IMG/VR virus record: IMGVR_UViG_3300027621_000003
Span: 124,001-188,000 of that record
DNA: 64,000 nt
Strand: one strand, 5' to 3'
Shown: piece after piece, positions 3,558 to 31,869 of the stretch
Layout of the letters: every line of letters starts with the position of its first letter
Numbering within the stretch: the first letter of the stretch is position 1
Translations under genes and position numbers: made by a program
Notes under the pieces: model-generated
The model's input: only the letters and a program-made list of their open reading frames with translations
Told to the model about the DNA's origin: nothing
Database searches by the model: none

Positions 3558-3635
3558 AATGAAATTATTTCTTAATAAATAGTTGTTGATATAAAAAAGT
3601 ATATTTATATTTGTTGAAATGTTCTTTGAAATTAT

Positions 3636-4021
3636 GGGGATGACACAGATTCGATTGGCGTAGTTAGTCAATGGGTGCATGTATGAGCTGAAATAACTCA
3701 TTAAAAACTGGTTCAAAAAATTAAACGGAAACGTTTTAGACAAAATGGCGACTATCGGATTAATCCGTGAAAACGCTTCTGTAGTAGCCTAATCGCTATT
3801 ACAAAACAGGTCGGGAGACATACAACCTAGGAACAGAAGTCTTTTAAAGGTGTAGTTTCTATCTTAAAAGAAACAAGTGGAGGATTAGTTCTCAGTAAAC
3901 CAAACCACTATAAAATAAGGGAATTGTGAATTTCGGAACATTAGAAAATGTTGACCTAAACATGTAGTACCTCTTGGGTAAGACGAGCAAGACCGGGGGG
4001 CAGTACCTCGCATCTCCACCA
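3636..4021 (+). ncRNA. ssrA: tmRNA
   Basis: 5' GGGGATG pairs with 3' CATCTCC-ACCA, giving the G3:U70 Ala identity. Tag frame follows TAAAC at 3727..3792 (GNVLDKMATIGLIRENASVVA*). T-loop GGCAGTA; terminator follows. Confidence 0.9.
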
Positions 4022-4024
4022 AAT

Positions 4025-4055
4025 AAAAAAACCCATCTTTACGGATGGGTTTTTC
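4025..4055. terminator. intrinsic terminator
   Basis: aaaaaaacccatc-tttacg-gatgggtttttt. Confidence 0.75.
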
Positions 4056-6357: not shown

Positions 6358-6424
6358 TAGTAAAAATATATTGTTTAGTAAATAAATACAAAAAAACCTG
6401 ATATAAATCAGGTCTTTTTAAATT

Positions 6425-6611: not shown

Positions 6612-6688
6612 TGGTGGACCCTGTAGGGCTTGAACCTACGACCTACTGATTATGAGTCAGCCGCTCTGACCAACTGAGCTAAGGGTCC
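6612..6688 (-). tRNA. tRNA-Ile2 (CAU, lysidine type)
   Basis: GGACCCT...CTGACTCATAATCAG...GGGTCCACCA; Ile2-type body, encoded CCA. Confidence 0.8.
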
Positions 6689-7140: not shown

Positions 7141-7154
7141 AGTTATGATTTTAG

Positions 7155-7228
7155 TAGACGAGAAGGGACTTGAACCCCCAACCTTGATGATATAAGCATC
7201 CTGCTCTAACCTGTTGAGCTACCCGTCC
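7155..7228 (-). tRNA. tRNA-Ile (UAU)
   Basis: Cloverleaf; anticodon arm GATG-CTTATAT-CATC. Confidence 0.85.
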
Positions 7229-8369: not shown

Positions 8370-8431
8370 ATATAATAAATATATTGATTGTCGTTAAAAT
8401 TAGATTTGGTCAAATATTTTTTTAACGATTG

Positions 8432-8507
8432 TAGCGTAGACTGGATTCGAACCAGCGTGCCTCTGCTCCCAAAGCAGATGAGATAAACCTGACTCCTCTA
8501 CTACGCT
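8432..8507 (-). tRNA. tRNA-Pro (UGG)
   Basis: TCTGC-TTTGGGA-GCAGA. Confidence 0.85.
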
Positions 8508-8516
8508 ATTTGTTTG

Positions 8517-8586
8517 TGGACACTGTGGGAATCGAACCCATACGTTCTGATTGCAAATCAAACGGTCTGCCGTTGACATCAGGCCC
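8517..8586 (-). tRNA. tRNA-Ala (UGC), atypical
   Basis: TTTGA-TTTGCAA-TCAGA with G3:U70; irregular acceptor and D arms. Confidence 0.65.
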
Positions 8587-8597
8587 TTTTATTTTTG

Positions 8598-8669
8598 CGG
8601 TCCCACCGGGAATCGAACCCGGCACTTTGCCGTGACAGGGCAATATTATAGCCGATTAACTACAGGACC
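8598..8669 (-). tRNA. tRNA-Asp (GUC)
   Basis: TTGCC-CTGTCAC-GGCAA. Confidence 0.9.
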
Positions 8670-8737
8670 GTAAGTTAGTAAACCCGGGCCCAACAAGCCG
8701 TGATAAACACGGAAGGGCCCTTTTTAAGATTTACTTT

Positions 8738-8813
8738 TGGAGCGAGAGACCAGGTTCGAACTGGCGACCCTCAGTTTGGTAAACTGATGCTCTACCGACT
8801 GAGCTACTCTCGC
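8738..8813 (-). tRNA. tRNA-Gly (ACC)
   Basis: GCGAGAG acceptor, U73, CCA; anticodon arm TCAGT-TTACCAA-ACTGA. Confidence 0.85.
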
Positions 8814-8818
8814 TTTTG

Positions 8819-8890
8819 AGCGAGTGGGGAGAATCGAACTCCCATATCCAGCTTGGAAGGCTGGAGTAATAGCCTTTATACTACACTCGC
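8819..8890 (-). tRNA. tRNA-Gly (UCC)
   Basis: CCAGC-CTTCCAA-GCTGG. Confidence 0.9.
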
Positions 8891-8982
8891 TTTTTTCGAG
8901 TCAGAGTAGTCACGGCCACCTCTTATCCTTCTGACTCTTGATGTAAAAGTGGCCAATGTGGCACGACCCAAGTTACATCCAT

Positions 8983-9056
8983 TGGTTGCGGACCCGAGAC
9001 TCGAACTCGGAACTATGGGTTATGAGCCCATTATGTTACCATTACACCAACCCGCG
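8983..9056 (-). tRNA. initiator tRNA-fMet (CAU)
   Basis: C1:A72 mismatch, three G-C pairs in anticodon stem, CCA. Confidence 0.9.
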
Positions 9057-9065
9057 ATTTATTTG

Positions 9066-9137
9066 TACTCGGTAGGGGAGTCGAACCCCTCTTTCCAGGA
9101 TGAAAACCTGGCATCCTAACCGATAGATGAACCGAGC
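9066..9137 (-). tRNA. tRNA-Glu (UUC)
   Basis: CCAGG-TTTTCAT-CCTGG. Confidence 0.9.
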
Positions 9138-9150
9138 AATTATTTTTTTC

Positions 9151-9171
9151 TTACCAATACGTCAAAGAACT
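9151..9171 (-). promoter_or_regulatory. boxA-like antitermination element
   Basis: AGTTCTTTGACGTATTGGTAA, identical to 16088..16108, directly upstream of the first tRNA. Confidence 0.7.
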
Positions 9172-9242
9172 TTTTTGTTCTGTTGTCTTATTCAACAACA
9201 ATACAAAGTTAATACATTTTTTTAATACTACCAAACAAACAC

Positions 9243-9274
9243 AAAAAAAACCCATCCTTTCGAGATGGGTTTTT
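9243..9274 (-). terminator. attenuator terminator of tRNA operon 1
   Basis: AAAAACCCATC-TCGAAAG-GATGGGTTTTTTTT. Confidence 0.8.
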
Positions 9275-9295
9275 GTAAGATATTTTTTTACAATA

Positions 9296-9364
9296 TTATC
9301 CCATCTCCACTTTGGAAGTATCAGCCTCTGTTGCTGGTGTGCCGAATATGAATATGGTTTTCAT
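9296..9364 (-). CDS. leader peptide of tRNA operon 1 (22 aa, MKTIFIFGTPATEADTSKVEMG)
   Basis: Hand-translated; last codons GAGATGGG are complementary to the terminator 5' arm. Confidence 0.7.
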   Translation of the reverse strand: MKTIFIFGTPATEADTSKVEMG

Positions 9365-9421
9365 TGAATGTATTATTATTTGATTTCTTATTAAATATAA
9401 TAAACTTTTAAAAAGTGTCAA

Positions 9422-10690
9422 TTAAAACGCCAAAGAATTTACATAACTTACCGATTTTTGTACAGACTTTTCAATTGTTTTAATAATTGAGTCCAAATTT
9501 AACTCGGCAACATTACCAATTGAGATTCTAAACCATCCTTTGTTACTCTTTGAACCAAAATATTCAAACGGAACAATTCCCAACCCACAGGTATTAATTA
9601 AGAACGAAATATACTCTTCTGTGGATGAAAATGAATGAACATAACCCAAGTAAACCGAAATATAAATTCCACCATCAGGTTTTTGGTAATCAACATTATG
9701 ACCTTTGTTTTTCAATTCTTCCAACTTGTCACAGATTTTATCTGATATAAATTCATACGATTTTGTTACATAGTTTATGTGAGAAATGTAATCTTCATAA
9801 TCTACTCTGATGTACGCATCCAATGCTCGTTGTTCAGGTTTTGGTGCCCATGCTCCAATGTGAGACAAAACTTCGGTTATCTTTCCAATAATATCTTTTG
9901 GACCAAACAACCAACCAACACGAACACCAGTTGCGTTTAATGATTTTGAAATACCATCAGCACAAATCAAATAATCTCTGATTTCAGGACATAAAGTTAA
10001 TGGGTGGATAAACAAACCTTCTTTGGTGATGTCAGAATAAATCTGGTCAAAGAACAAATACAATGGTCTTGAACCTACTTGTGTTGACCTGATTTTATTT
10101 TCTCTCACAATCAACTCACAAATACCTTTCAGAACTTCGGGGTCAATTACACGACCTGTTGGATTTTGTGGCGAACAAATGCAAACCAATGATGTTTTAT
10201 CACTTATTCTACCGTCAACATCTTCAACGGTTGGAAAAAATGAATTTTCAGGTGTACATTCAATTTCTTCTTTTTGTGCATTATGTAAAAAACAATAGTG
10301 GTTATTATTCCAAGATGGTACAGGATAAATCACCTCTTCATTCGGATTTACCGTGGCTTTATAAACCGTATAAATCAATGGACGAACTCCACCACCAATT
10401 AAGATTTCTTCAGGTGAATAATCAACATTGAACTGATGTTTAATGTGTTTGGAAACAGATTCCCTTAATTCAAGTTCTCCTTGTGAGTTTGGATAGTTGG
10501 TTAAATCCCACTCGTAAGCATCTTGAATGTGTTTTCTTAATTTTGAGGGTATTGGCCATAGTTTGGAATTAAAGTCACCTATGGTTAGGTTAGATACTGG
10601 TTTTGTTTTAGCAATTTCTTTGATTTGTTGTGAGATTTTAATAATTTCAGAGCCAACAATATTGTTCCCTACATTTGATAATTTTTCCAT
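9422..10690 (-). CDS. class I/II PLP-dependent (aspartate-type) aminotransferase
   Basis: SPQNPTG, DQIY, GISKSLNATGVRVGW (PLP lysine) and WFRIS motifs. Confidence 0.9.
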   Translation of the reverse strand: MEKLSNVGNNIVGSEIIKISQQIKEIAKTKPVSNLTIGDFNSKLWPIPSKLRKHIQDAYEWDLTNYPNSQGELELRESVSKHIKHQFNVDYSPEEILIGGGVRPLIYTVYKATVNPNEEVIYPVPSWNNNHYCFLHNAQKEEIECTPENSFFPTVEDVDGRISDKTSLVCICSPQNPTGRVIDPEVLKGICELIVRENKIRSTQVGSRPLYLFFDQIYSDITKEGLFIHPLTLCPEIRDYLICADGISKSLNATGVRVGWLFGPKDIIGKITEVLSHIGAWAPKPEQRALDAYIRVDYEDYISHINYVTKSYEFISDKICDKLEELKNKGHNVDYQKPDGGIYISVYLGYVHSFSSTEEYISFLINTCGLGIVPFEYFGSKSNKGWFRISIGNVAELNLDSIIKTIEKSVQKSVSYVNSLAF

Positions 10691-10718
10691 TATCAAAAGT
10701 ATAAGACACTAATAAGAA

Positions 10719-12278
10719 TTATTCAAATATTTTACTATAAAATTTGTCAAAGTTTGGTCCTTTAACCAAACCACTTTTTCCTTGTCTGGCACTAATACCT
10801 GCCATATTTGACGCCGAAAAGAAACTACTATATTGACCAGGACCACTTCTTCTACCTATTTGAGTTAAAAATTCGTTCTTATTACCGACCTTACCTTCAG
10901 GAATGTTTTTAAGATATTCCATAAATGCTTTGGTTAACGCACCTTTACCTGTGAAGGTGTATTTTGACCTGGTATAAGTCTTAGACTTTGTTGGTGGATA
11001 CCTATCTAACAAGAATTCATCTTCACTAAGTTCTTTGTATATTGTATAATAAAATTCTTTATACAAATTATCTAATAAATTACTAGTTCTTCTTAAAACG
11101 TGTTCAGGGTCACTCTGTCTATCCTCATCCAATATTAAAGTTTTAGTATAGGTTGATTTTTTAACAATATTTTGGTCCGTATTATATGGTATTATCTCAG
11201 CGTCAAATCTAACGATGTGTTTTCCTATCATTACTTGAGTATTATAAACCTTAAAATAACAATCAATAACGCCATCTTCACTATAAGAAGTTTTTCCTTC
11301 TTTATCAATTTCTACAACCTCCCAAGGCGTACTAATTCTAATACTCGTATTATCTCTATCACTATCTTCAACGCTTGGTCTTCCAATATAAAACTTTAAT
11401 TTCCCACCTTTGAATTGGTATATCTCATTGTGGCTTGTAGTAACTTTTGGTATTATTTTATAAATAACATCCAAGACATCTTCTTTAGGGAATGATGTTT
11501 TATAGTCATTAACCATTGAATTATACGCATCTTTTGGCATATGAGCCAATACTGATTCTTTTTCTCTTGATGTCAATCTTTCGTCAGTTGAATCGTACCA
11601 AATTGAATCTGAATCAAATTTTCCATTCTTTGGTGCGTGAATGGCCATTTTGTAAAATTTATTATCCCTGTCAACATTTTTTAATATTAAATAATACAAG
11701 TTTCCATTTGAACTATATTGATTGAAATACGATGGATTACCTTTCATTGTTGTACACCATCTTGTACCTGAACCATAATAACAAGATGCGGTAAATGATT
11801 TTGGTTTTATAACCAACAACGTATCGTTTTCAAAAATTTTATCTATTTCTTTCTTGGCTAATTTTTCTGTCTGTTTGGTCTCAACGTCAGTTTTAATCTT
11901 TTGAGCTTCATTGAAAAAATCTTGTATATTTGTACTGTATTGTCTAAACTCAGGATATTTGAATTTTGATTTGTGTTTTTCAAATGTATCTAAAGAAGCA
12001 ACAATCTTGTCAATTTCACTCCTCATTCTAAATATTAGAGTTCTTGCTCTGTCTTTGTCTAAAGGCTCAGCTTCACCTGAATAATAATTTACGGTATAAT
12101 AATAATCCAAAATATCATTAAGATATTTGTAATTAGTCTCTTTTATAAAAGGTTCACCAATTAAAAAATCATACGCAGACGCATCATCCATGTAAGTGGA
12201 TATCATCTTTCTTTCACCATCAATACTTTTTTGGAATTTCTTAAATGAGTCTTCCTTACGACCTTCAAATAAAATCAT
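10719..12278 (-). CDS. ASCYYGSGTRWCT-domain protein, paralog 2
   Basis: 519 aa; shares the domain and the LFEGRKEDS N-terminus with 625..2418. Confidence 0.6.
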   Translation of the reverse strand: MILFEGRKEDSFKKFQKSIDGERKMISTYMDDASAYDFLIGEPFIKETNYKYLNDILDYYYTVNYYSGEAEPLDKDRARTLIFRMRSEIDKIVASLDTFEKHKSKFKYPEFRQYSTNIQDFFNEAQKIKTDVETKQTEKLAKKEIDKIFENDTLLVIKPKSFTASCYYGSGTRWCTTMKGNPSYFNQYSSNGNLYYLILKNVDRDNKFYKMAIHAPKNGKFDSDSIWYDSTDERLTSREKESVLAHMPKDAYNSMVNDYKTSFPKEDVLDVIYKIIPKVTTSHNEIYQFKGGKLKFYIGRPSVEDSDRDNTSIRISTPWEVVEIDKEGKTSYSEDGVIDCYFKVYNTQVMIGKHIVRFDAEIIPYNTDQNIVKKSTYTKTLILDEDRQSDPEHVLRRTSNLLDNLYKEFYYTIYKELSEDEFLLDRYPPTKSKTYTRSKYTFTGKGALTKAFMEYLKNIPEGKVGNKNEFLTQIGRRSGPGQYSSFFSASNMAGISARQGKSGLVKGPNFDKFYSKIFE

Positions 12279-12307
12279 ATATATAAATACTCACAATTAT
12301 GTATTTG

Positions 12308-12381
12308 TAGCGAGGGAGGGAATTGAACCCCCCACCTCAGGGTTATGAATCCTGCGCTCTAACCGACTGAGCTACCTCGCC
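12308..12381 (-). tRNA. elongator tRNA-Met (CAU)
   Basis: GGCGAGG...CAGGATTCATAACCCTG. Confidence 0.85.
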
Positions 12382-12385
12382 ATGA

Positions 12386-12997
12386 TTATTCTATGGTTTC
12401 ACCATCCAATGTATAAATCATACATGAGGATGATTTCCCTGAATTATCCAAACAATCTTCAATTTCTAATGGTTGTCCTTTAAAAAAGACTTGACCGATA
12501 AAATCATAATCACCTTCTGGTGTTCCTATTGAACCTGATGAGTACGTAAAATCTGTCGGAGTTGGTACTGTGTCAGACTCAAGTGAAAATTTAAACATTC
12601 CACCTTTGTTTTCATCAATACTCAAATAGACATTTGTTGGTCCTTCTTTTTGAGGAAACGCATTATACTCTCTGTACTCATACTTTTCTTCAAAATCTTC
12701 AATTGTTTCGTATAAGTCGGCGGTTTCATCAATACCAAACTCTAATACTTTATTTTCTTCTTCATCAAGAAGTTCAAAGTGCATTGTACCATTGTCAAAC
12801 GCTTCGGTTTTGTGAAAGATTTCACCGTCCCAAAAATCAAGGTCCAAAAGTTCATCTAAATCAAAACGGATTTCATGAAGTTCAGAAAAACCTTCCTCTT
12901 CCATTTTATCTTTAATAATTTGTATTTGTTCGTCAGTTAGAGATTTGCAGACTGCCTCAAAAGACCATCCATAAGTGTTAAGTGTGTATTTAGCCAT
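12386..12997 (-). CDS. hypothetical acidic protein
   Basis: 203-aa ORF with TATATTTG promoter. Confidence 0.6.
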   Translation of the reverse strand: MAKYTLNTYGWSFEAVCKSLTDEQIQIIKDKMEEEGFSELHEIRFDLDELLDLDFWDGEIFHKTEAFDNGTMHFELLDEEENKVLEFGIDETADLYETIEDFEEKYEYREYNAFPQKEGPTNVYLSIDENKGGMFKFSLESDTVPTPTDFTYSSGSIGTPEGDYDFIGQVFFKGQPLEIEDCLDNSGKSSSCMIYTLDGETIE

Positions 12998-13032
12998 ACG
13001 GCAAATATAAATTATAAACCGTGATTCGTCAA

Positions 13033-13470
13033 TTATTTTAAGAATCTTAATTTGTATAATGTTGAGTAAATCAATTCTTGAACTCCATCAATTTGATTTT
13101 GAATATAAGATTCTTTAACCGATGTCCTATTTTTTTCAATATTTTCATCTAATTCTTTAAAATAAGCTATTACTTGTTCTGTTGATTTGTAATCAACTGT
13201 TTTAATTGTTTTATAACCAGTAATTATTTCGTATTTTCCTTGATAACTTTCAACAATATTATCAACTAACCCATCAATTCCATCATAATATTCTTGTAAA
13301 GCTTTATGTTCAGAAAATGATGATTGTGATTTTGTCTGCCAATGAAAGATATGTACTTGAGACTGTGAATGTAATAATGTTGCAATCATATCAACCACAT
13401 CGGCAGTTTCAGTTGCAGGATTTGATTTTGATGATAAACCATTTAAAAGGTCTCTTTTTGTAATTTCCAT
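13033..13470 (-). CDS. ferritin/Dps-like four-helix protein
   Basis: HIFHW...EHKALQEYYD...VD..VE pattern. Confidence 0.6.
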   Translation of the reverse strand: MEITKRDLLNGLSSKSNPATETADVVDMIATLLHSQSQVHIFHWQTKSQSSFSEHKALQEYYDGIDGLVDNIVESYQGKYEIITGYKTIKTVDYKSTEQVIAYFKELDENIEKNRTSVKESYIQNQIDGVQELIYSTLYKLRFLK

Positions 13471-13491
13471 ATCAATAAATATACTGATGTG

Positions 13492-14175
13492 TTAATATGT
13501 CTTAAACTTCATTTCTTTGATAACACAATTTCCAATTTTTTTATGTCCTGATGGTGCCATATGACAAAGTCCATCCCAACAATCCGATTTTGTAATCACA
13601 CGAGTATTAATCACTTTTCCACCAACAATTTTTTTTATCAATTCATTCTGAAATTTGGAATACTTAACTCTGTAGTTTGGATTTTCTGGTGTGTTGATGC
13701 AAATTAATGGGTCAAATCCGGTAATTACAACTGGTTTAACACCTTTGGAATTACAAATGTTTACAATTTTTTGAATGTTCTTTACTGCGCTTTCAATGGT
13801 GATTTTGCTGTTATACATATCATTGGCACCTCCATAGATAAAACAATAATCTAAACCATTGTGAATAGATTCTTTTGCTCTTTCTAACATCCAACCTGTG
13901 GTTTTTCCACCAACAGATATGTTATTCATTCTCATTTTTGTTTTGTTGGATAGAGTATATTGCCAACCATTAGGATTTGATGTGTGAGAATCACCAATAA
14001 AAAGAACGTATTTTCCTTTTACATCCACAATTGTGTCTTGTGGTTTAATTTTTACCGTATCAATTTTAACGGTATCTTCAATTTGTTTATTGTTACCCCA
14101 AACTTTCCAACTTGTTATGAATCCTAAAATTGCTATAACAATGACCAAAATAATTGCTTTTACTAAATTTTTCAT
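13492..14175 (-). CDS. SGNH/GDSL hydrolase, membrane-anchored
   Basis: IGDSHT, GG.TT, YGGAND and DGLCH blocks. Confidence 0.85.
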   Translation of the reverse strand: MKNLVKAIILVIVIAILGFITSWKVWGNNKQIEDTVKIDTVKIKPQDTIVDVKGKYVLFIGDSHTSNPNGWQYTLSNKTKMRMNNISVGGKTTGWMLERAKESIHNGLDYCFIYGGANDMYNSKITIESAVKNIQKIVNICNSKGVKPVVITGFDPLICINTPENPNYRVKYSKFQNELIKKIVGGKVINTRVITKSDCWDGLCHMAPSGHKKIGNCVIKEMKFKTY

Positions 14176-14281
14176 ATTTTTTATTAAAAAACACTCTCAA
14201 GCTCTCTACTCCCAGTTCCGAGGAATTGTATCTTACTTAGCCCGTCTCACCACTGTGTGGGTACTTGAGTTTATGTTTTTG

Positions 14282-14359
14282 TAGTCAGGACAGGATTCGA
14301 ACCTGTAACACCGGTTTGACCACTTACGTGGTTGCGTCTATCCATTCCGCCACCTGACT
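14282..14359 (-). ncRNA. tRNA-like RNA (Leu-type body, no canonical anticodon loop)
   Basis: AGTCAGG/CCTGACT acceptor, GGCGGAATGG..AGACGC D arm, TTCGAAT T loop; anticodon arm ACCAC-GTAA-GTGGT. Confidence 0.7.
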
Positions 14360-14436
14360 ATAGTTGTCAGTCTCTCCTGACCGTCACCCCCACTCCGAAG
14401 GTATGAGCCTTCATATGTGATGCTGGGTTAGCTTTG

Positions 14437-14510
14437 TGGTGTGAACGGGAATCGAACCACGTGGCACGTAGGGTTTCAATCTACTGCTCTACCTGCTGAG
14501 CTACCACACC
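14437..14510 (-). tRNA. tRNA-Phe (GAA), second copy
   Basis: GTAGA-TTGAAAC-CCTAC; slightly irregular T stem. Confidence 0.75.
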
Positions 14511-14537
14511 ATTATTGTTATACAAAGTTAAAATATA

Positions 14538-15014
14538 TTATCCAATTTTCCAAGCTCCAATTATGTGTTTTTTTATTTTTTTACCGTCCTCAGGGTTACC
14601 AATAACAACACCATCTTTAATGGTAAATGCGTGACCTTTAACAACCACCATGTAAGAACCAACAGGATATTTTTTAATGAACGAAAATGTTGTTGTTGCT
14701 CTTAATTTTTTAACACCTTTAACTACAACATAATACAACATGGTATTGTGTTCCTCAGAAATAATTTGAACGTCTTTACCGTTAATTTGTTTACCATTCT
14801 TTGATAACAAATTCATGCCAGTACCAAGTAAAAAAGTACCTTTACCATTTTTTCTCTTGAAAGTTTCTTTAACAAATTGGTGGGCGGAATCATAGTCCAT
14901 ATCCGCGGCTGATGCAATTGCCCTAACAACACAATCGTTTTTTTCAGATTTGGCAATTTTTGATTCAGTATATCCTTTGATTGCGTTTGAAGATGATATA
15001 AACCCCTTTTCCAT
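14538..15014 (-). CDS. hypothetical phage protein (NDCVVRA...GHAF motif, possible Cys/His dyad)
   Basis: Start moved to MEKG after TATATTTG promoter. Confidence 0.55.
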   Translation of the reverse strand: MEKGFISSSNAIKGYTESKIAKSEKNDCVVRAIASAADMDYDSAHQFVKETFKRKNGKGTFLLGTGMNLLSKNGKQINGKDVQIISEEHNTMLYYVVVKGVKKLRATTTFSFIKKYPVGSYMVVVKGHAFTIKDGVVIGNPEDGKKIKKHIIGAWKIG

Positions 15015-15060
15015 ACTACAAATATACAACAGGTATTTGACATTACAAAAAAATATTTTG

Positions 15061-15133
15061 CTCCCCGGATAGGATTTGAACCTATGACCTATCGCTTAAC
15101 AGGCGAGTGCTCTAACCACTGAGCTACCGAGGA
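15061..15133 (-). tRNA. tRNA-Asn (GUU)
   Basis: TCGC-CTGTTAA-GCGA. Confidence 0.9.
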
Positions 15134-15139
15134 ATGTTG

Positions 15140-15221
15140 TACCAAAGGTGGGAGTCGAACCCACACGTCTTTAAGACATTAGTTTCTAAGACTAATGCGG
15201 CTACCGTTACGCCACTTTGGT
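15140..15221 (-). tRNA. tRNA-Leu (UAG)
   Basis: TTAGT-CTTAGAA-ACTAA, long variable arm. Confidence 0.9.
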
Positions 15222-15227
15222 ATTTTG

Positions 15228-15298
15228 CGCAAGTGGAAGGACTCGAACCCTCGCCAAAAGTTTTGGAGACCTTTATGCTACCATTACACCACACTTAC
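15228..15298 (-). tRNA. tRNA-Trp (CCA)
   Basis: AAGGT-CTCCAAA-ACTTT, G73. Confidence 0.9.
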
Positions 15299-15305
15299 GT
15301 ATTTG

Positions 15306-15380
15306 TGATTCCTGAGGGACTCGAACCCCCACATCTTCTCGTCCGTAGCGAGATGTTTTATCCAATTAAACTAAGGAACC
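15306..15380 (-). tRNA. tRNA-Arg (ACG)
   Basis: TCTCG-CTACGGA-CGAGA. Confidence 0.9.
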
Positions 15381-15383
15381 ATT

Positions 15384-15458
15384 TGGGGTGACTGATGGGA
15401 TTCGAACCCACGACACTCGGCACCACAAGCCGATGCTCTACCACTGAACTACAGTCAC
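15384..15458 (-). tRNA. tRNA-His (GUG)
   Basis: TCGGC-TTGTGGT-GCCGA, C73, CCA; G-1 not encoded. Confidence 0.9.
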
Positions 15459-15460
15459 AG

Positions 15461-15534
15461 AGTCCATAGTTGGAATCGAACCAACGAATAACAGTTTTGC
15501 AGACTGTCCCTTTGAACCGCTCAGGCATATGGAC
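15461..15534 (-). tRNA. tRNA-Cys (GCA)
   Basis: ACAGT-CTGCAAA-ACTGT, U73. Confidence 0.9.
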
Positions 15535-15542
15535 TTATATTC

Positions 15543-15589
15543 TATAATCCTCCAAATCTAGTAAAAAAAGTGAGTTTTGGAGGATTATA
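15543..15589. repeat. 14-bp inverted repeat hairpin in tRNA spacer
   Basis: tataatcctccaaa ... tttggaggattata. Confidence 0.7.
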
Positions 15590-15596
15590 AGTTTTG

Positions 15597-15678
15597 TGCC
15601 AGCAGTAGGACTCGAACCTACGAACTCAAATGAGAGCGGGTTTACAATCCGCCGCAATTGCCGCTATGCGATACTGGC
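15597..15678 (-). tRNA. tRNA-Tyr (GUA)
   Basis: GCGGA-TTGTAAA-CCCGC, long variable arm. Confidence 0.9.
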
Positions 15679-15685
15679 ATTTTTG

Positions 15686-15758
15686 TCTTTCCTGTTGGAT
15701 TTGAACCAACGACATCTTGGATGTAAGCCAAGTGCTCTTCCAACTGAGCTAAGGAAAG
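15686..15758 (-). tRNA. tRNA-Val (UAC)
   Basis: CTTGG-CTTACAT-CCAAG. Confidence 0.9.
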
Positions 15759-15764
15759 ATATTG

Positions 15765-15838
15765 TGACCCCATCGGGACTCGAACCCGAAACCCCCGTGT
15801 TAAAAGCACGGTGCTCTAGCCAATTGAGCTATAAGGTC
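15765..15838 (-). tRNA. tRNA-Lys (UUU)
   Basis: CCGTG-CTTTTAA-CACGG. Confidence 0.9.
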
Positions 15839-15844
15839 ATATTG

Positions 15845-15915
15845 TTACCCCTGAAGGATTCGAACCTCCACTAAGTGGACCAAAACCACTCGTCCTGCCG
15901 TTAGACGAAAGGGTA
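15845..15915 (-). tRNA. tRNA-Gln (UUG)
   Basis: AGTGG-TTTTGGT-CCACT. Confidence 0.9.
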
Positions 15916-15920
15916 ATTTA

Positions 15921-15997
15921 TGGTTGGTGATACAGGACTTGAACCTGTGACCCCTACGGTATCAGCGTAGTGCTCTAACCAACTGAGCTAATCACCA
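15921..15997 (-). tRNA. tRNA-Ile (GAU)
   Basis: CTACG-CTGATAC-CGTAG, CCA. Confidence 0.9.
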
Positions 15998-16006
15998 ATG
16001 TATTTG

Positions 16007-16079
16007 TGGGGTAGACAGGTATCGAACCTGTTCCTTCGGATTTTCAGTCCGGCGCAATGACCTCATCTGCCACTACCCC
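16007..16079 (-). tRNA. tRNA-Phe (GAA)
   Basis: CGGA-CTGAAAA-TCCG. Confidence 0.85.
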
Positions 16080-16087
16080 ATTTTTGG

Positions 16088-16108
16088 TTACCAATACGTC
16101 AAAGAACT
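16088..16108 (-). promoter_or_regulatory. boxA-like antitermination element
   Basis: Identical 21-mer to 9151..9171. Confidence 0.7.
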
Positions 16109-16109
16109 T

Positions 16110-16146
16110 AAAAACAAAAAAACCCGAACCTTGTGAGTTCGGGTTT
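16110..16146 (-). terminator. attenuator terminator of tRNA operon 2
   Basis: AAACCCGAAC-TCACAAG-GTTCGGGTTTTTTTGTTTTT. Confidence 0.8.
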
Positions 16147-16167
16147 CCTTTTTTAGGCTACTACGTG

Positions 16168-16263
16168 TTAACTTATAACACCCGAACTTGAAAATACGCG
16201 AAGATACCAATTCTGACAGAATTGAATGACATGTTTCACGATTTGTTTATTTACGAGTTTCAT
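16168..16263 (-). CDS. leader peptide of tRNA operon 2 (31 aa, MKLVNKQIVKHVIQFCQNWYLRVFSSSGVIS)
   Basis: Hand-translated; downstream of TATCTTTG promoter; 3' end carries AGTTCGGGT, complementary to the terminator 5' arm. Confidence 0.8.
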   Translation of the reverse strand: MKLVNKQIVKHVIQFCQNWYLRVFSSSGVIS

Positions 16264-16312
16264 TGTGTTTAGTATTAAATATGGTACAAAGATACAAAAG
16301 TTTCTTGATATG

Positions 16313-16573
16313 TTAAATATTTTTTTCGTTTTTATTTTTTAATAACCAGTTGGCTCCGACTACAAACCCTTGTTTCCATTTTGTAATATCATCATCACAC
16401 ATCCCTTCACTGTATTGTTGATATTTGTCATCAGCGCCAATATGAATCATTTGTTGGATTCTTTTTTCTATAAAACCGGGCTTAGTTTCAAACTCAGGTT
16501 CTCCCAATTCAACCATACCATTTTTCCACTTTTTCCAAGTGTCAAAATCTTTTAAATCTTCAATGTTAATCAT
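16313..16573 (-). CDS. hypothetical protein
   Basis: 86-aa ORF. Confidence 0.5.
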   Translation of the reverse strand: MINIEDLKDFDTWKKWKNGMVELGEPEFETKPGFIEKRIQQMIHIGADDKYQQYSEGMCDDDITKWKQGFVVGANWLLKNKNEKNI

Positions 16574-22110: not shown

Positions 22111-22195
22111 GCCGATGTGGTGAAAAGGTAGCCACGCAGGACTTAAAATCCTGTGGACTGTAAGGTCCGTGCCGGTTCGACTCCGGCCATCGGTA
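22111..22195 (+). tRNA. tRNA-Leu (UAA)
   Basis: CAGGA-CTTAAAA-TCCTG, long variable arm. Confidence 0.9.
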
Positions 22196-31782: not shown

Positions 31783-31869
31783 GGAGGTTTGGCAGAGCGG
31801 TCGATTGCGTCAGTCTTGAAAACTGAAGATGTTGAAAGGCATCCTGGGGTTCGAATCCCTAAGCCTCCG
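31783..31869 (+). tRNA. tRNA-Ser (UGA)
   Basis: TCAGT-CTTGAAA-ACTGA, long variable arm. Confidence 0.9.

Follow-up and report, generated by a model that had tools for sequence, protein, structure and literature searches.

A Bacteroidota-type boxA and a putative leader-peptide attenuator precede the tRNA arrays of a freshwater phage

Phage tRNA arrays are common but almost nothing is known of how they are expressed, and we asked how a 295-kb freshwater phage might transcribe two long arrays of tRNA genes and a tmRNA gene, none of which is translated. The window analysed is a stretch of 64,000 nucleotides (positions 124,001 to 188,000 of IMG/VR record IMGVR_UViG_3300027621_000003). An initial annotation, made from the sequence alone, had noted an identical 21-bp boxA-like element within about 15 nt of the first tRNA of both tRNA operons and a partial copy before the tmRNA, had likened its core to the rrn boxA bound by NusB/NusE, and had inferred that the phage borrows host rRNA antitermination to carry transcription of long untranslated RNA operons past Rho. 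Our searches confirmed the observation. The 21-mer occurs exactly twice in the window, and no match appeared in 100 dinucleotide shuffles even with 3 mismatches allowed; both copies are on the minus strand (the initial annotation gave no strand), as are the tRNAs, so that each copy lies upstream of its array. The flanks of the two copies differ, so this is not a larger duplication. The elements and the RNA genes that they precede are:

16088..16108, minus strand: boxA copy 1 (21-mer; conserved core of 17 nt at 16091-16107), 8 nt upstream of tRNA-Phe (16079)
15060..16079, minus strand: tRNA array 1, Phe, Ile, Gln, Lys, Val, Tyr, Cys, His, Arg, Trp, Leu, Asn (12 genes, about 1 kb untranslated)
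9151..9171, minus strand: boxA copy 2 (21-mer), 13 nt upstream of tRNA-Glu (9137)
8431..9137, minus strand: tRNA array 2, Glu, Met, Gly, Gly, Asp, Ala (8517-8586, anticodon UGC, found by Rfam only), Pro; the unit continues with ORFs and tRNA-Thr, Ile, Met to the terminator at 6389-6420
3621..3637, plus strand: boxA variant (13/17) abutting the tmRNA, its last two G being tmRNA nucleotides 1-2
3636..4021, plus strand: phage tmRNA gene, with a TAnnTTTG promoter box at 3606-3613 and a terminator at 4027-4054

The tmRNA is real (Rfam RF00023, 63.7 bits), although ARAGORN misses it, and the 9-mer core of the element (3621-3629) lies 6 nt before it. This 9-mer occurs five times in the window (1.12 expected; 0 of 100 shuffles reach 5) and 14 times in the 295-kb genome; three of the 14 sit directly before RNA genes, while one of the others, at 10047, lies inside the 424-aa ORF 9422..10696. 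No other tRNA in the window has a match better than 10/17 within 80 nt upstream; single tRNAs have only a promoter, a TAnnTTTG box 9–16 nt upstream, and no boxA, so that in the window the element heads only the long untranslated units, where it lies on the transcribed strand, downstream of Bacteroidota-type promoters.

We next asked whether the element matches the rrn boxA of Bacteroidota, a comparison that had been set in advance as one that could refute the interpretation. The 17-nt core proved letter-for-letter identical to the element about 35 nt upstream of 23S rRNA in the 16S-23S spacers of Bacteroidota genomes: in five whole genomes all nine exact copies are spacer copies, and at least 16 further spacer copies occur among 120 bacterial loci. 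A 15/17 variant lies 71 nt upstream of 16S in Fluviicola. The exact 17-mer is not universal in the phylum, as only 10 of 61 sampled genomes have a copy with at most 1 mismatch, partly because many metagenome-assembled genomes probably lack rrn operons, and since the true host species is unknown the agreement is with the phylum's rrn operons rather than with those of a named host. In addition, about 16 of 30 Bacteroidota tmRNA genes carry a boxA-like core directly upstream, the same layout as that of the phage tmRNA, and exact copies precede the tmRNA in two further loci (L188, and L139 by eye); the copy that the initial annotation called "partial" is therefore the normal host form for tmRNA genes. 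CRISPR-like arrays lie directly downstream of the exact 17-mer, never upstream, in seven bacterial loci, which parallels the boxA noted upstream of gammaproteobacterial CRISPR operons (cited in PMC13753749). By eye, the core shares 8 of 12 positions with the E. coli boxA consensus and 8 of 11 with that of B. subtilis, both as printed in PMC13753749 (U-rich core CUCUUUA / UCUUUGA). The interpretation given in the initial annotation is thus supported, with binding by NusB/S10, and a benefit by escape from Rho rather than by faster elongation or RNA folding, remaining inferred; tRNA transcripts are highly structured and are not classical Rho substrates, so the selected benefit may be speed or folding.

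In IMG/VR, 39 of 59 distinct contexts of the core have a same-strand tRNA within 40 nt, usually 5–18 nt, heading arrays of up to 13 tRNAs, and 34 of 92 contexts of a one-letter variant do the same; the element thus heads tRNA arrays in dozens of unrelated phages, always in the orientation of the RNA genes. The Nus factors would be supplied by the host, as NusB (PF01029) is present in G001 and G002 (genomes representing host lineages) and in the Bacteroides thetaiotaomicron control, while no NusB, NusG, S10 or RNA polymerase beta subunit was detected in the phage.

Two alternative roles for the 17-mer were considered. The first, which we regard as unlikely, is that it is an RNA processing signal, for example a landing site for an endonuclease or a maturation factor shared by the precursors of 23S rRNA, tmRNA, CRISPR RNA and tRNA. 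In favor of this, the element always lies in a 5' leader that must be removed (5–18 nt before tRNAs, abutting the tmRNA, and about 35 nt before 23S), and the last 7 nt of the core have no counterpart in the E. coli or B. subtilis boxA. However, the first 10–12 nt match the boxA consensus of distant phyla, where NusB binding has been shown (PMC13753749, PMC3177189), the set of loci (both rrn positions, CRISPR leaders, a prophage early region) is the set known for boxA, tRNA 5' ends are made by RNase P, which needs no leader sequence, and single tRNAs in the same phage lack the element. The second, which appears very unlikely, is that it acts at the DNA level, as part of a promoter or as a binding site for a transcription factor that drives stable-RNA genes; it does contain TTTG and TTGAC, which resemble promoter hexamers, and is preceded by T- or A-rich tracts. 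Against this, its distance to upstream T runs varies from 3 to about 25 nt, it occurs inside transcription units (in rrn spacers and between tRNAs within arrays), separate canonical TAnnTTTG boxes exist upstream, and the tRNA would start only 5–18 nt after it, too close for a -33 element. RNA libraries also bear on this point: one metatranscriptome contig spans the leader, terminator and boxA of array 1 (16087-16318), and an adapter-bounded fragment that starts within boxA joins it to tRNA-Phe and tRNA-Ile (15954-16094), although these data are contigs, which cannot show RNA ends or exclude DNA carry-over.

When we examined the regions upstream of the two copies, we found that both follow a short leader ORF, an antiterminator/terminator pair and a T run, an arrangement that the initial annotation had missed. 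Its predicted parts are:

16287..16294, minus strand: Bacteroidota-type -7 promoter box (TAnnTTTG) of the array-1 leader; a box at the same relative position (190–265 nt before boxA) occurs in most of the other phage families examined
16168..16263, minus strand: leader ORF 1 (31 codons), of which codons 2-24 use only, and use all of, the 12 amino acids of array 1
16180..16187, minus strand: antiterminator segment 1, an 8-nt copy of the terminator's 3' arm, inside the end of leader ORF 1
16116..16150, minus strand: attenuator terminator 1 (GC hairpin plus T run, the latter at about 16110-16116), 7 nt before boxA copy 1 and the top-ranked terminator-like site
9296..9364, minus strand: leader ORF 2 (22 codons), containing Glu, Met, Gly, Asp, Ala, Pro, Thr and Ile, which are all 8 amino-acid types of array 2 and its continuation
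9246..9274, minus strand: attenuator terminator 2, with its antiterminator segment at 9300-9306, inside the end of leader ORF 2
9178..9211, minus strand: second promoter box (9204-9211, TAnnTTTG), then a small hairpin (about 9178-9201) directly before boxA copy 2, a hairpin-then-boxA order that matches that of rrn leaders

The truncated RNA of leader 1 folds into the antiterminator at -16.9 kcal/mol (matched by 0 of 200 shuffles), and the corresponding fold of leader 2 is -15.5 kcal/mol (matched by 1 of 200 shuffles). A copy of the terminator's 3' arm (8–11 nt, a different sequence in each phage) lies 38–63 nt upstream of the hairpin in 8 of the 15 loci examined, and in those eight 0–3 of 300 shuffles do as well; the arm copy changes together with the terminator sequence in most of the unrelated families, although some families have only a 5–6 nt arm copy. 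Across 10 unrelated phage families the leader ORFs (22–46 codons) encode every amino acid whose tRNA lies in the compact array just downstream (10/10); the product of the chance probabilities is about 1e-9.7, and 0 of 18,413 swaps of leaders between phages reach 10. With arrays extended to 4.5 kb the summed z is 27.8, against a swap mean of -2.8 (sd 4.2, max 13.9; 0 of 22,066 reach it). Most matching codons are readable by the array's anticodons (e.g., 20/20, 10/10 and 22/25), and in three related phages the leader contains the amino acids of tRNAs that lie beyond a gap of about 500 nt. An independent replication set run through an automatic pipeline gave p of about 0.004; this set is small, and only part of the boxA-headed arrays have the attenuator (7 of 34 in the replication set by strict criteria, some of these seven calls being weak).

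It remains possible that the small ORFs and repeated arm segments are incidental, the hairpin being only the terminator of the preceding gene and the arrays being expressed by leaky readthrough or from unrecognised promoters, as the genomes are AT-rich and short ORFs are common. We consider this improbable, because the leader composition is specific to its own array in the swap tests and in the replication set, and because promoter position, ORF length and the position of the arm copy at the end of the ORF recur across families. In array 2, however, the second promoter lies between the terminator and boxA, so that this array is not controlled by the attenuator alone.

Based on these results, our preferred reading (probability roughly 0.75) is that the 17-nt core is the boxA of the phage's Bacteroidota host, the RNA signal that loads NusB-S10 onto RNA polymerase in rRNA operons, placed by the phage at the 5' end of its long untranslated units (a 12-tRNA array, a 7-tRNA array and the 386-nt tmRNA), and that in both window arrays, and in many unrelated phages, it is the second half of a two-step cassette. 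In this view host RNA polymerase starts at a TAnnTTTG promoter and transcribes a short leader ORF whose codons call for the tRNAs that the array encodes and whose end can pair with the 5' arm of the following intrinsic terminator. If ribosomes run through the leader to its stop codon they would cover the antiterminator segment, the terminator would form and the array would stay off; if a ribosome stalls for want of any of those tRNAs, the antiterminator would form, and the polymerase would pass the terminator, meet boxA and transcribe the array. Once boxA is transcribed, host NusB/S10, together with NusG, NusA and the other factors, would convert the polymerase into the rRNA-type termination-resistant, fast form that finishes the untranslated array, and placing boxA after the terminator would keep the antitermination complex from overriding the sensor. 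What our analysis establishes is limited to the sequence identities, positions, folds and statistics; all of it is computational, and Nus binding, antitermination and Rho resistance, translation of the leaders, ribosome stalling, termination at the attenuator, the response of readthrough to charged tRNA and the direction of the switch are inferred.

We further speculate, and think it more probable than not, that many Bacteroidota phages carry this arrangement as a portable cassette of promoter, "menu" leader peptide, attenuator, host boxA and tRNA array, in which the leader spells out, codon by codon, the tRNAs encoded downstream. The phage would then switch its array on only when the cell's decoding capacity for any of those codons falls, for example through host shut-off, tRNA-cleaving defences or a codon-usage mismatch, and boxA would guarantee complete transcription of the array. 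We found no such feedback switch in the papers searched; it would be the first leader-peptide attenuator found to control tRNA genes and the first feedback control described for viral tRNA arrays. If confirmed, it gives a direct handle on the long-standing question of why phages carry tRNAs and when they need them, as the leader sequence would state which tRNAs the phage monitors; it would also extend classical attenuation from one or a few amino acids to as many as 13, and offers a compact, programmable sensor of translational capacity for synthetic biology. The 17-nt Bacteroidota element, found before rRNA, tmRNA and CRISPR arrays, also makes Nus-factor antitermination testable in this phylum.

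Each half of the proposed cassette has known counterparts. Like the rrn boxA of E. coli and B. subtilis, bound by the rRNA antitermination complex (NusB-S10, NusG, NusA, SuhB, S4), the phage element is a short U-rich sequence in the same order after a small hairpin and at the start of a long untranslated transcript; however, it heads phage tRNA arrays and a phage tmRNA rather than rRNA, and its conserved block of 17 nt is longer than the classical boxA of about 12 nt. BoxA-dependent antitermination of CRISPR arrays is reported from Salmonella/E. coli (Stringer et al. 2020), with the same logic of a boxA in the leader protecting a long array of short untranslated RNA genes from premature termination, whereas here the array consists of tRNAs, sits on a virus and is coupled to an upstream putative attenuator. 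The leader regions resemble the ribosome-mediated attenuators of amino-acid operons (trp, his, leu, thr; multivalent ilv leaders) and of pheST in having a short leader ORF enriched in regulatory codons, alternative antiterminator and terminator hairpins and a T run before the regulated genes. They differ in that the regulated genes are tRNAs rather than enzymes, the leader samples up to 13 different amino acids instead of repeating one, the layout has three segments and a boxA follows the terminator. The best Rfam matches to the leader, to the Thr and Leu operon leaders, are weak (Thr_leader, 25.7 bits against a cut-off of 55), and no T-box or leader family (Thr_leader, Leu_leader, Trp_leader) passes its threshold in the whole window; the module would therefore work like these leaders but is not a member of them. 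As with the phage lambda nut sites (boxA, boxB and N protein), a phage would use the host's Nus machinery through a boxA on its own transcripts. Here, however, the element is an exact host rrn copy rather than a diverged boxA, the targets are RNA genes rather than delayed-early mRNAs, no conserved boxB was identified, hairpins precede boxA rather than follow it, and no N-like protein was identified, although none was sought. A closer analogue of nut may be the stem-flanked copy of the element in Bacteroides prophage-like regions.

The 21-mer described in the initial annotation as a shared element before both tRNA operons occurs exactly twice in the window, with no match in 100 dinucleotide shuffles, and that observation therefore holds. 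All nearby tRNA genes are also on the minus strand, so that each copy lies upstream of its array, and because the sequences flanking the two copies differ we rejected a larger duplication and consider this a discrete element:

16088-16108, minus strand, copy 1, 8 nt before tRNA-Phe (16079)
9151-9171, minus strand, copy 2, 13 nt before tRNA-Glu (5' end at 9137)

The 9-nt core of the element occurs five times in the window against 1.1 expected, and 14 times in the whole 294,914-bp IMG/VR virus record, which has a G+C content of 32%. One core copy lies 6 nt before a tmRNA gene identified by Rfam at 3636-4021 but missed by ARAGORN; over 17 nt this copy matches 13/17, and its final GG are the first two nucleotides of the tmRNA. 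A megablast search against GenBank phages returned only a 94-nt hit, so that no annotated relative is available, although the phage recurs in at least a dozen freshwater and lake metagenomes dated 2017-2021.

As comparison with host rRNA operons had been set beforehand as the test of the boxA interpretation, we scanned one genome per prokaryotic species for the exact 17-nt core. This search returned more than 120 stretches, most of them from Bacteroidota, with scattered hits in other phyla lying in what look like coding regions. In Bacteroidota the element sits in the 16S-23S spacer, after tRNA-Ile and tRNA-Ala and about 35 nt before the 5' end of 23S rRNA, and in five whole Bacteroidota genomes searched separately all nine exact copies are such spacer copies. 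In the complete Fluviicola genome a 15/17 variant lies 71 nt before 16S, downstream of a TAnnTTTG promoter, and the element therefore occupies both classical boxA positions of an rRNA operon. Its first 10-12 nt agree with the boxA consensus of E. coli and B. subtilis as printed in PMC13753749. The exact 17-mer is not universal in the phylum, as only 10 of 61 sampled genomes hold a copy with at most one mismatch (the commonest variant has A at position 11), although many of the sampled genomes are metagenome bins, which commonly lack rRNA operons. Six tandem 15/17 look-alikes in the genome designated G003 (G003:C2:241515-249754; loci L223, L227, L230, L232, L234 and L236) at first resembled a new boxA-headed array; however, they lie inside a giant repetitive ORF and are coding repeats, and we consider them chance matches.

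The host also uses the element elsewhere. Among 30 Bacteroidota tmRNA loci (L239-L268), about 16 tmRNA genes have a boxA-like core directly upstream, typically 15 nt followed by the GG that begins the tmRNA, such that the last GG of the element serves as tmRNA nucleotides 1-2; to our knowledge this fusion has not been described. One of these (L240) is nearly the phage's version, and two bacterial loci appear to have the exact 17-mer at this position (L188 by ARAGORN, L139 by eye). The copy before the phage tmRNA, which the initial annotation had regarded as partial, is therefore the normal host arrangement for that gene. In seven bacterial loci (L097:2300-4690, L205, L140, L128, L135, L127 and L208) the exact 17-mer is followed, and never preceded, by a CRISPR-like repeat array starting about 140 nt or more downstream; these include three Sphingobacterium species and two loci with 19 and 39 repeats starting about 140 nt downstream, and suggest boxA-dependent CRISPR transcription in Bacteroidota. 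A boxA upstream of gammaproteobacterial CRISPR operons is noted in PMC13753749, and Stringer et al. (2020) reportedly showed that it mediates antitermination of those arrays. The common denominator of all these loci is a long untranslated transcript. In B. thetaiotaomicron (locus L138:7380-7480, minus strand) the exact 17-mer is instead flanked by an 8-bp stem (stem, boxA, stem) in an intergenic region upstream of small ORFs, one of which is a Cro/C1-type helix-turn-helix protein; the same class was seen in L129 and L183 and in about 17 IMG/VR stretches such as L010, L019 and L023, and could represent a nut-like antitermination site of Bacteroides prophages.

Use of the element by phages is widespread and specific. 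The exact 17-mer occurs in 92 IMG/VR stretches that make up 59 distinct sequence contexts, and in 39 of these a same-strand tRNA starts within 40 nt (usually 5-18 nt) and is usually the first of an array of up to 13 tRNAs; the position-11 variant gives 34 of 92 contexts with a tRNA within 40 nt. In the window only the two long arrays and the tmRNA carry the element, whereas the single tRNAs examined (Met at 6612, Phe at 14436, Leu at 22111 and Ser at 31783) each have a TAnnTTTG box 9-16 nt upstream and no boxA. A reading of the element itself as a promoter was rejected, as its spacing is variable, it occurs inside transcription units and separate TAnnTTTG boxes exist. In the five bacterial genomes no copy with at most two mismatches lies next to a tRNA outside the rRNA operons, and the few tRNA-adjacent hits among the bacterial loci resemble phage contexts, e.g., the bacterial locus L186 matches the viral locus L053. 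Heading tRNA arrays therefore looks like a phage adaptation of a host signal. No NusB, NusG, S10 or RNA polymerase beta subunit was detected in the phage, whereas the bacterial genomes have NusB; together with the host-type promoters of the RNA genes, these results point to host RNA polymerase and host Nus factors.

We next examined what lies just upstream of each copy. Copy 1 follows by 7 nt the strongest terminator-like site in the region, with no promoter between them, and copy 2 has the same parts together with a second promoter box and a small hairpin before boxA:

16294-16287, minus strand, nearest promoter box upstream of copy 1
16263-16168, minus strand, leader ORF 1 (31 codons)
16187-16180, minus strand, 8-nt copy of the terminator's 3' arm, within the end of leader ORF 1
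16150-16116, minus strand, terminator-like site preceding copy 1
9364-9296, minus strand, leader ORF 2
9306-9300, minus strand, arm copy of the second module
9274-9246, minus strand, terminator of the second module
9211-9204, minus strand, second promoter box before copy 2

The arm copy at the end of leader ORF 1 can pair with the terminator's 5' arm. While the minimum-energy fold of the full leader shows only the terminator, RNA cut off before the 3' arm folds into exactly this antiterminator at -16.9 kcal/mol, which none of 200 shuffles matched, and the corresponding fold for copy 2 is -15.5 kcal/mol. The architecture recurs in unrelated phages, with a promoter box 190-265 nt before boxA, an ORF of 22-46 codons and a GC hairpin with a T run. 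In 8 of the 15 loci examined there is also an 8-11 nt copy of the 3' arm at the ORF's end, each with its own sequence, and only 0-3 of 300 shuffles do as well; other families have only a 5-6 nt copy.

The predicted leader peptides match their arrays. Codons 2-24 of leader 1 use only the twelve amino acids whose tRNAs form array 1 (Phe, Ile, Gln, Lys, Val, Tyr, Cys, His, Arg, Trp, Leu and Asn), and they use all twelve. Leader 2 contains Glu, Met, Gly, Asp, Pro, Thr, Ile and Ala; we predicted Ala from the leader, and then found that a tRNA at 8517-8586 (minus strand), missed by ARAGORN and scored by Rfam just above threshold (29.5 bits), has anticodon UGC, which is Ala. Across ten independent families the leader contains every amino acid of the compact array just downstream in 10 of 10 cases (product of the chance probabilities about 1e-9.7), whereas when leaders were swapped between phages the mean was 3.7 families and the maximum 8, with 0 of 18,413 swaps reaching 10. 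When we counted all same-strand tRNAs within 4.5 kb, the part of the leader before the arm copy was 23/24, 17/18, 21/24 and 16/25 within its own set, and similar in the other families; the summed z was 27.8, against a swap mean of -2.8 (sd 4.2, maximum 13.9; 0 of 22,066 reach it). In one family the hydrophobic-then-acidic core of the leader is built solely from Leu, Val, Ala, Trp, Asp and Glu, exactly the downstream set, and in three related phages the leader names Ala, Gln, Met, His, Arg and Ile, whose tRNAs lie beyond a gap of about 500 nt. Most matching codons can be read by the array's own anticodons (20/20, 10/10, 22/25 and 19/21). A replication set built with the variant boxA and a fully automatic pipeline gave seven modules, with coverage of 15/17, 9/10, 10/10, 10/10, 13/13, 2/2 and 3/3 and a summed z of 7.9, against a swap mean of 2.9 and sd 1.8 (59 of 14,621 swaps reach it).

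Based on this layout, which is that of a ribosome-mediated attenuator, we infer the following mechanism. A ribosome that reaches the leader's stop codon would cover the arm copy, the terminator would then form and the polymerase would stop before boxA, for copy 1 at the T run (about 16110-16116), whereas a ribosome that stalls earlier, because one of the sampled tRNAs is scarce, would leave the arm copy free, so that the antiterminator forms and the polymerase reads on. The first element then transcribed would be boxA, which would recruit host NusB-S10 and the rest of the rRNA antitermination complex for the untranslated kilobase ahead; putting boxA after the terminator, and not before it, is what one would expect if the sensor must not be overridden. 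The sequence identities, positions, folds and comparative statistics are thus direct results of the analysis, while binding of Nus factors, antitermination and attenuation by the leader are inferred from sequence alone. The initial annotation's proposal that the phage borrows host rRNA antitermination is supported on the sequence evidence; however, its view that the benefit is passage past Rho is one of several possibilities, as sequence does not discriminate between resistance to Rho, faster elongation and assisted RNA folding, and tRNA precursors are structured and not typical Rho substrates.

The element agrees with boxA by every criterion that sequence can address. The upstream module would work like classical leader-peptide attenuators but belongs to no Rfam leader family, as a search of the leader at a permissive threshold gave only sub-threshold matches. 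Our literature searches found no description of boxA before phage tRNA arrays, or of leader peptides controlling tRNA genes, although absence from the papers searched is not proof of novelty, and Baniulyte et al. (PMC5725501) searched only gamma-proteobacterial protein-coding genes for boxA and explicitly left out non-coding RNAs. While boxA and leader-peptide attenuators are each of known kinds, their inferred use before phage tRNA arrays appears to be new and rests on strong comparative statistics rather than experiment.

Weak support at the RNA level came from four lake metatranscriptomes that hold parts of the region as contigs, which cannot show true RNA ends. One contig (depth 23.7) covers 16087-16318, is continuous through the leader, terminator and boxA, and ends 8 nt before tRNA-Phe, and one adapter-bounded fragment covers 15954-16094 and joins the 3' part of boxA, tRNA-Phe and half of tRNA-Ile. 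The mature tRNA block at 15426-15823 has no coverage in any of the runs, which argues against plain DNA carry-over. One RNA-library contig (X16) joins 14583 to 16321, skipping 1737 nt that comprise the promoter, leader, boxA, the 12-tRNA array and part of the next ORF, and another (X17) diverges from the window exactly at 16318; although the supporting flanks are short, the cassette may be present or absent among strains, with a boundary just upstream of its promoter. At 14281-14359 (minus strand) ARAGORN calls an odd 79-nt tRNA with an undetermined anticodon, and contigs in RNA library X15 show joints that skip 32-34 nt inside it (14307 to 14340/14342); as the flanks are only 21-22 nt, this could be a small intervening sequence or a cross-match from another organism. 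In addition, ARAGORN predicts unusual anticodons for tRNA-Gly at 8738-8813 (minus strand; ACC) and tRNA-Ile at 7154-7228 (minus strand; UAT), which may bear on the decoding strategy or on evasion of anticodon nucleases.
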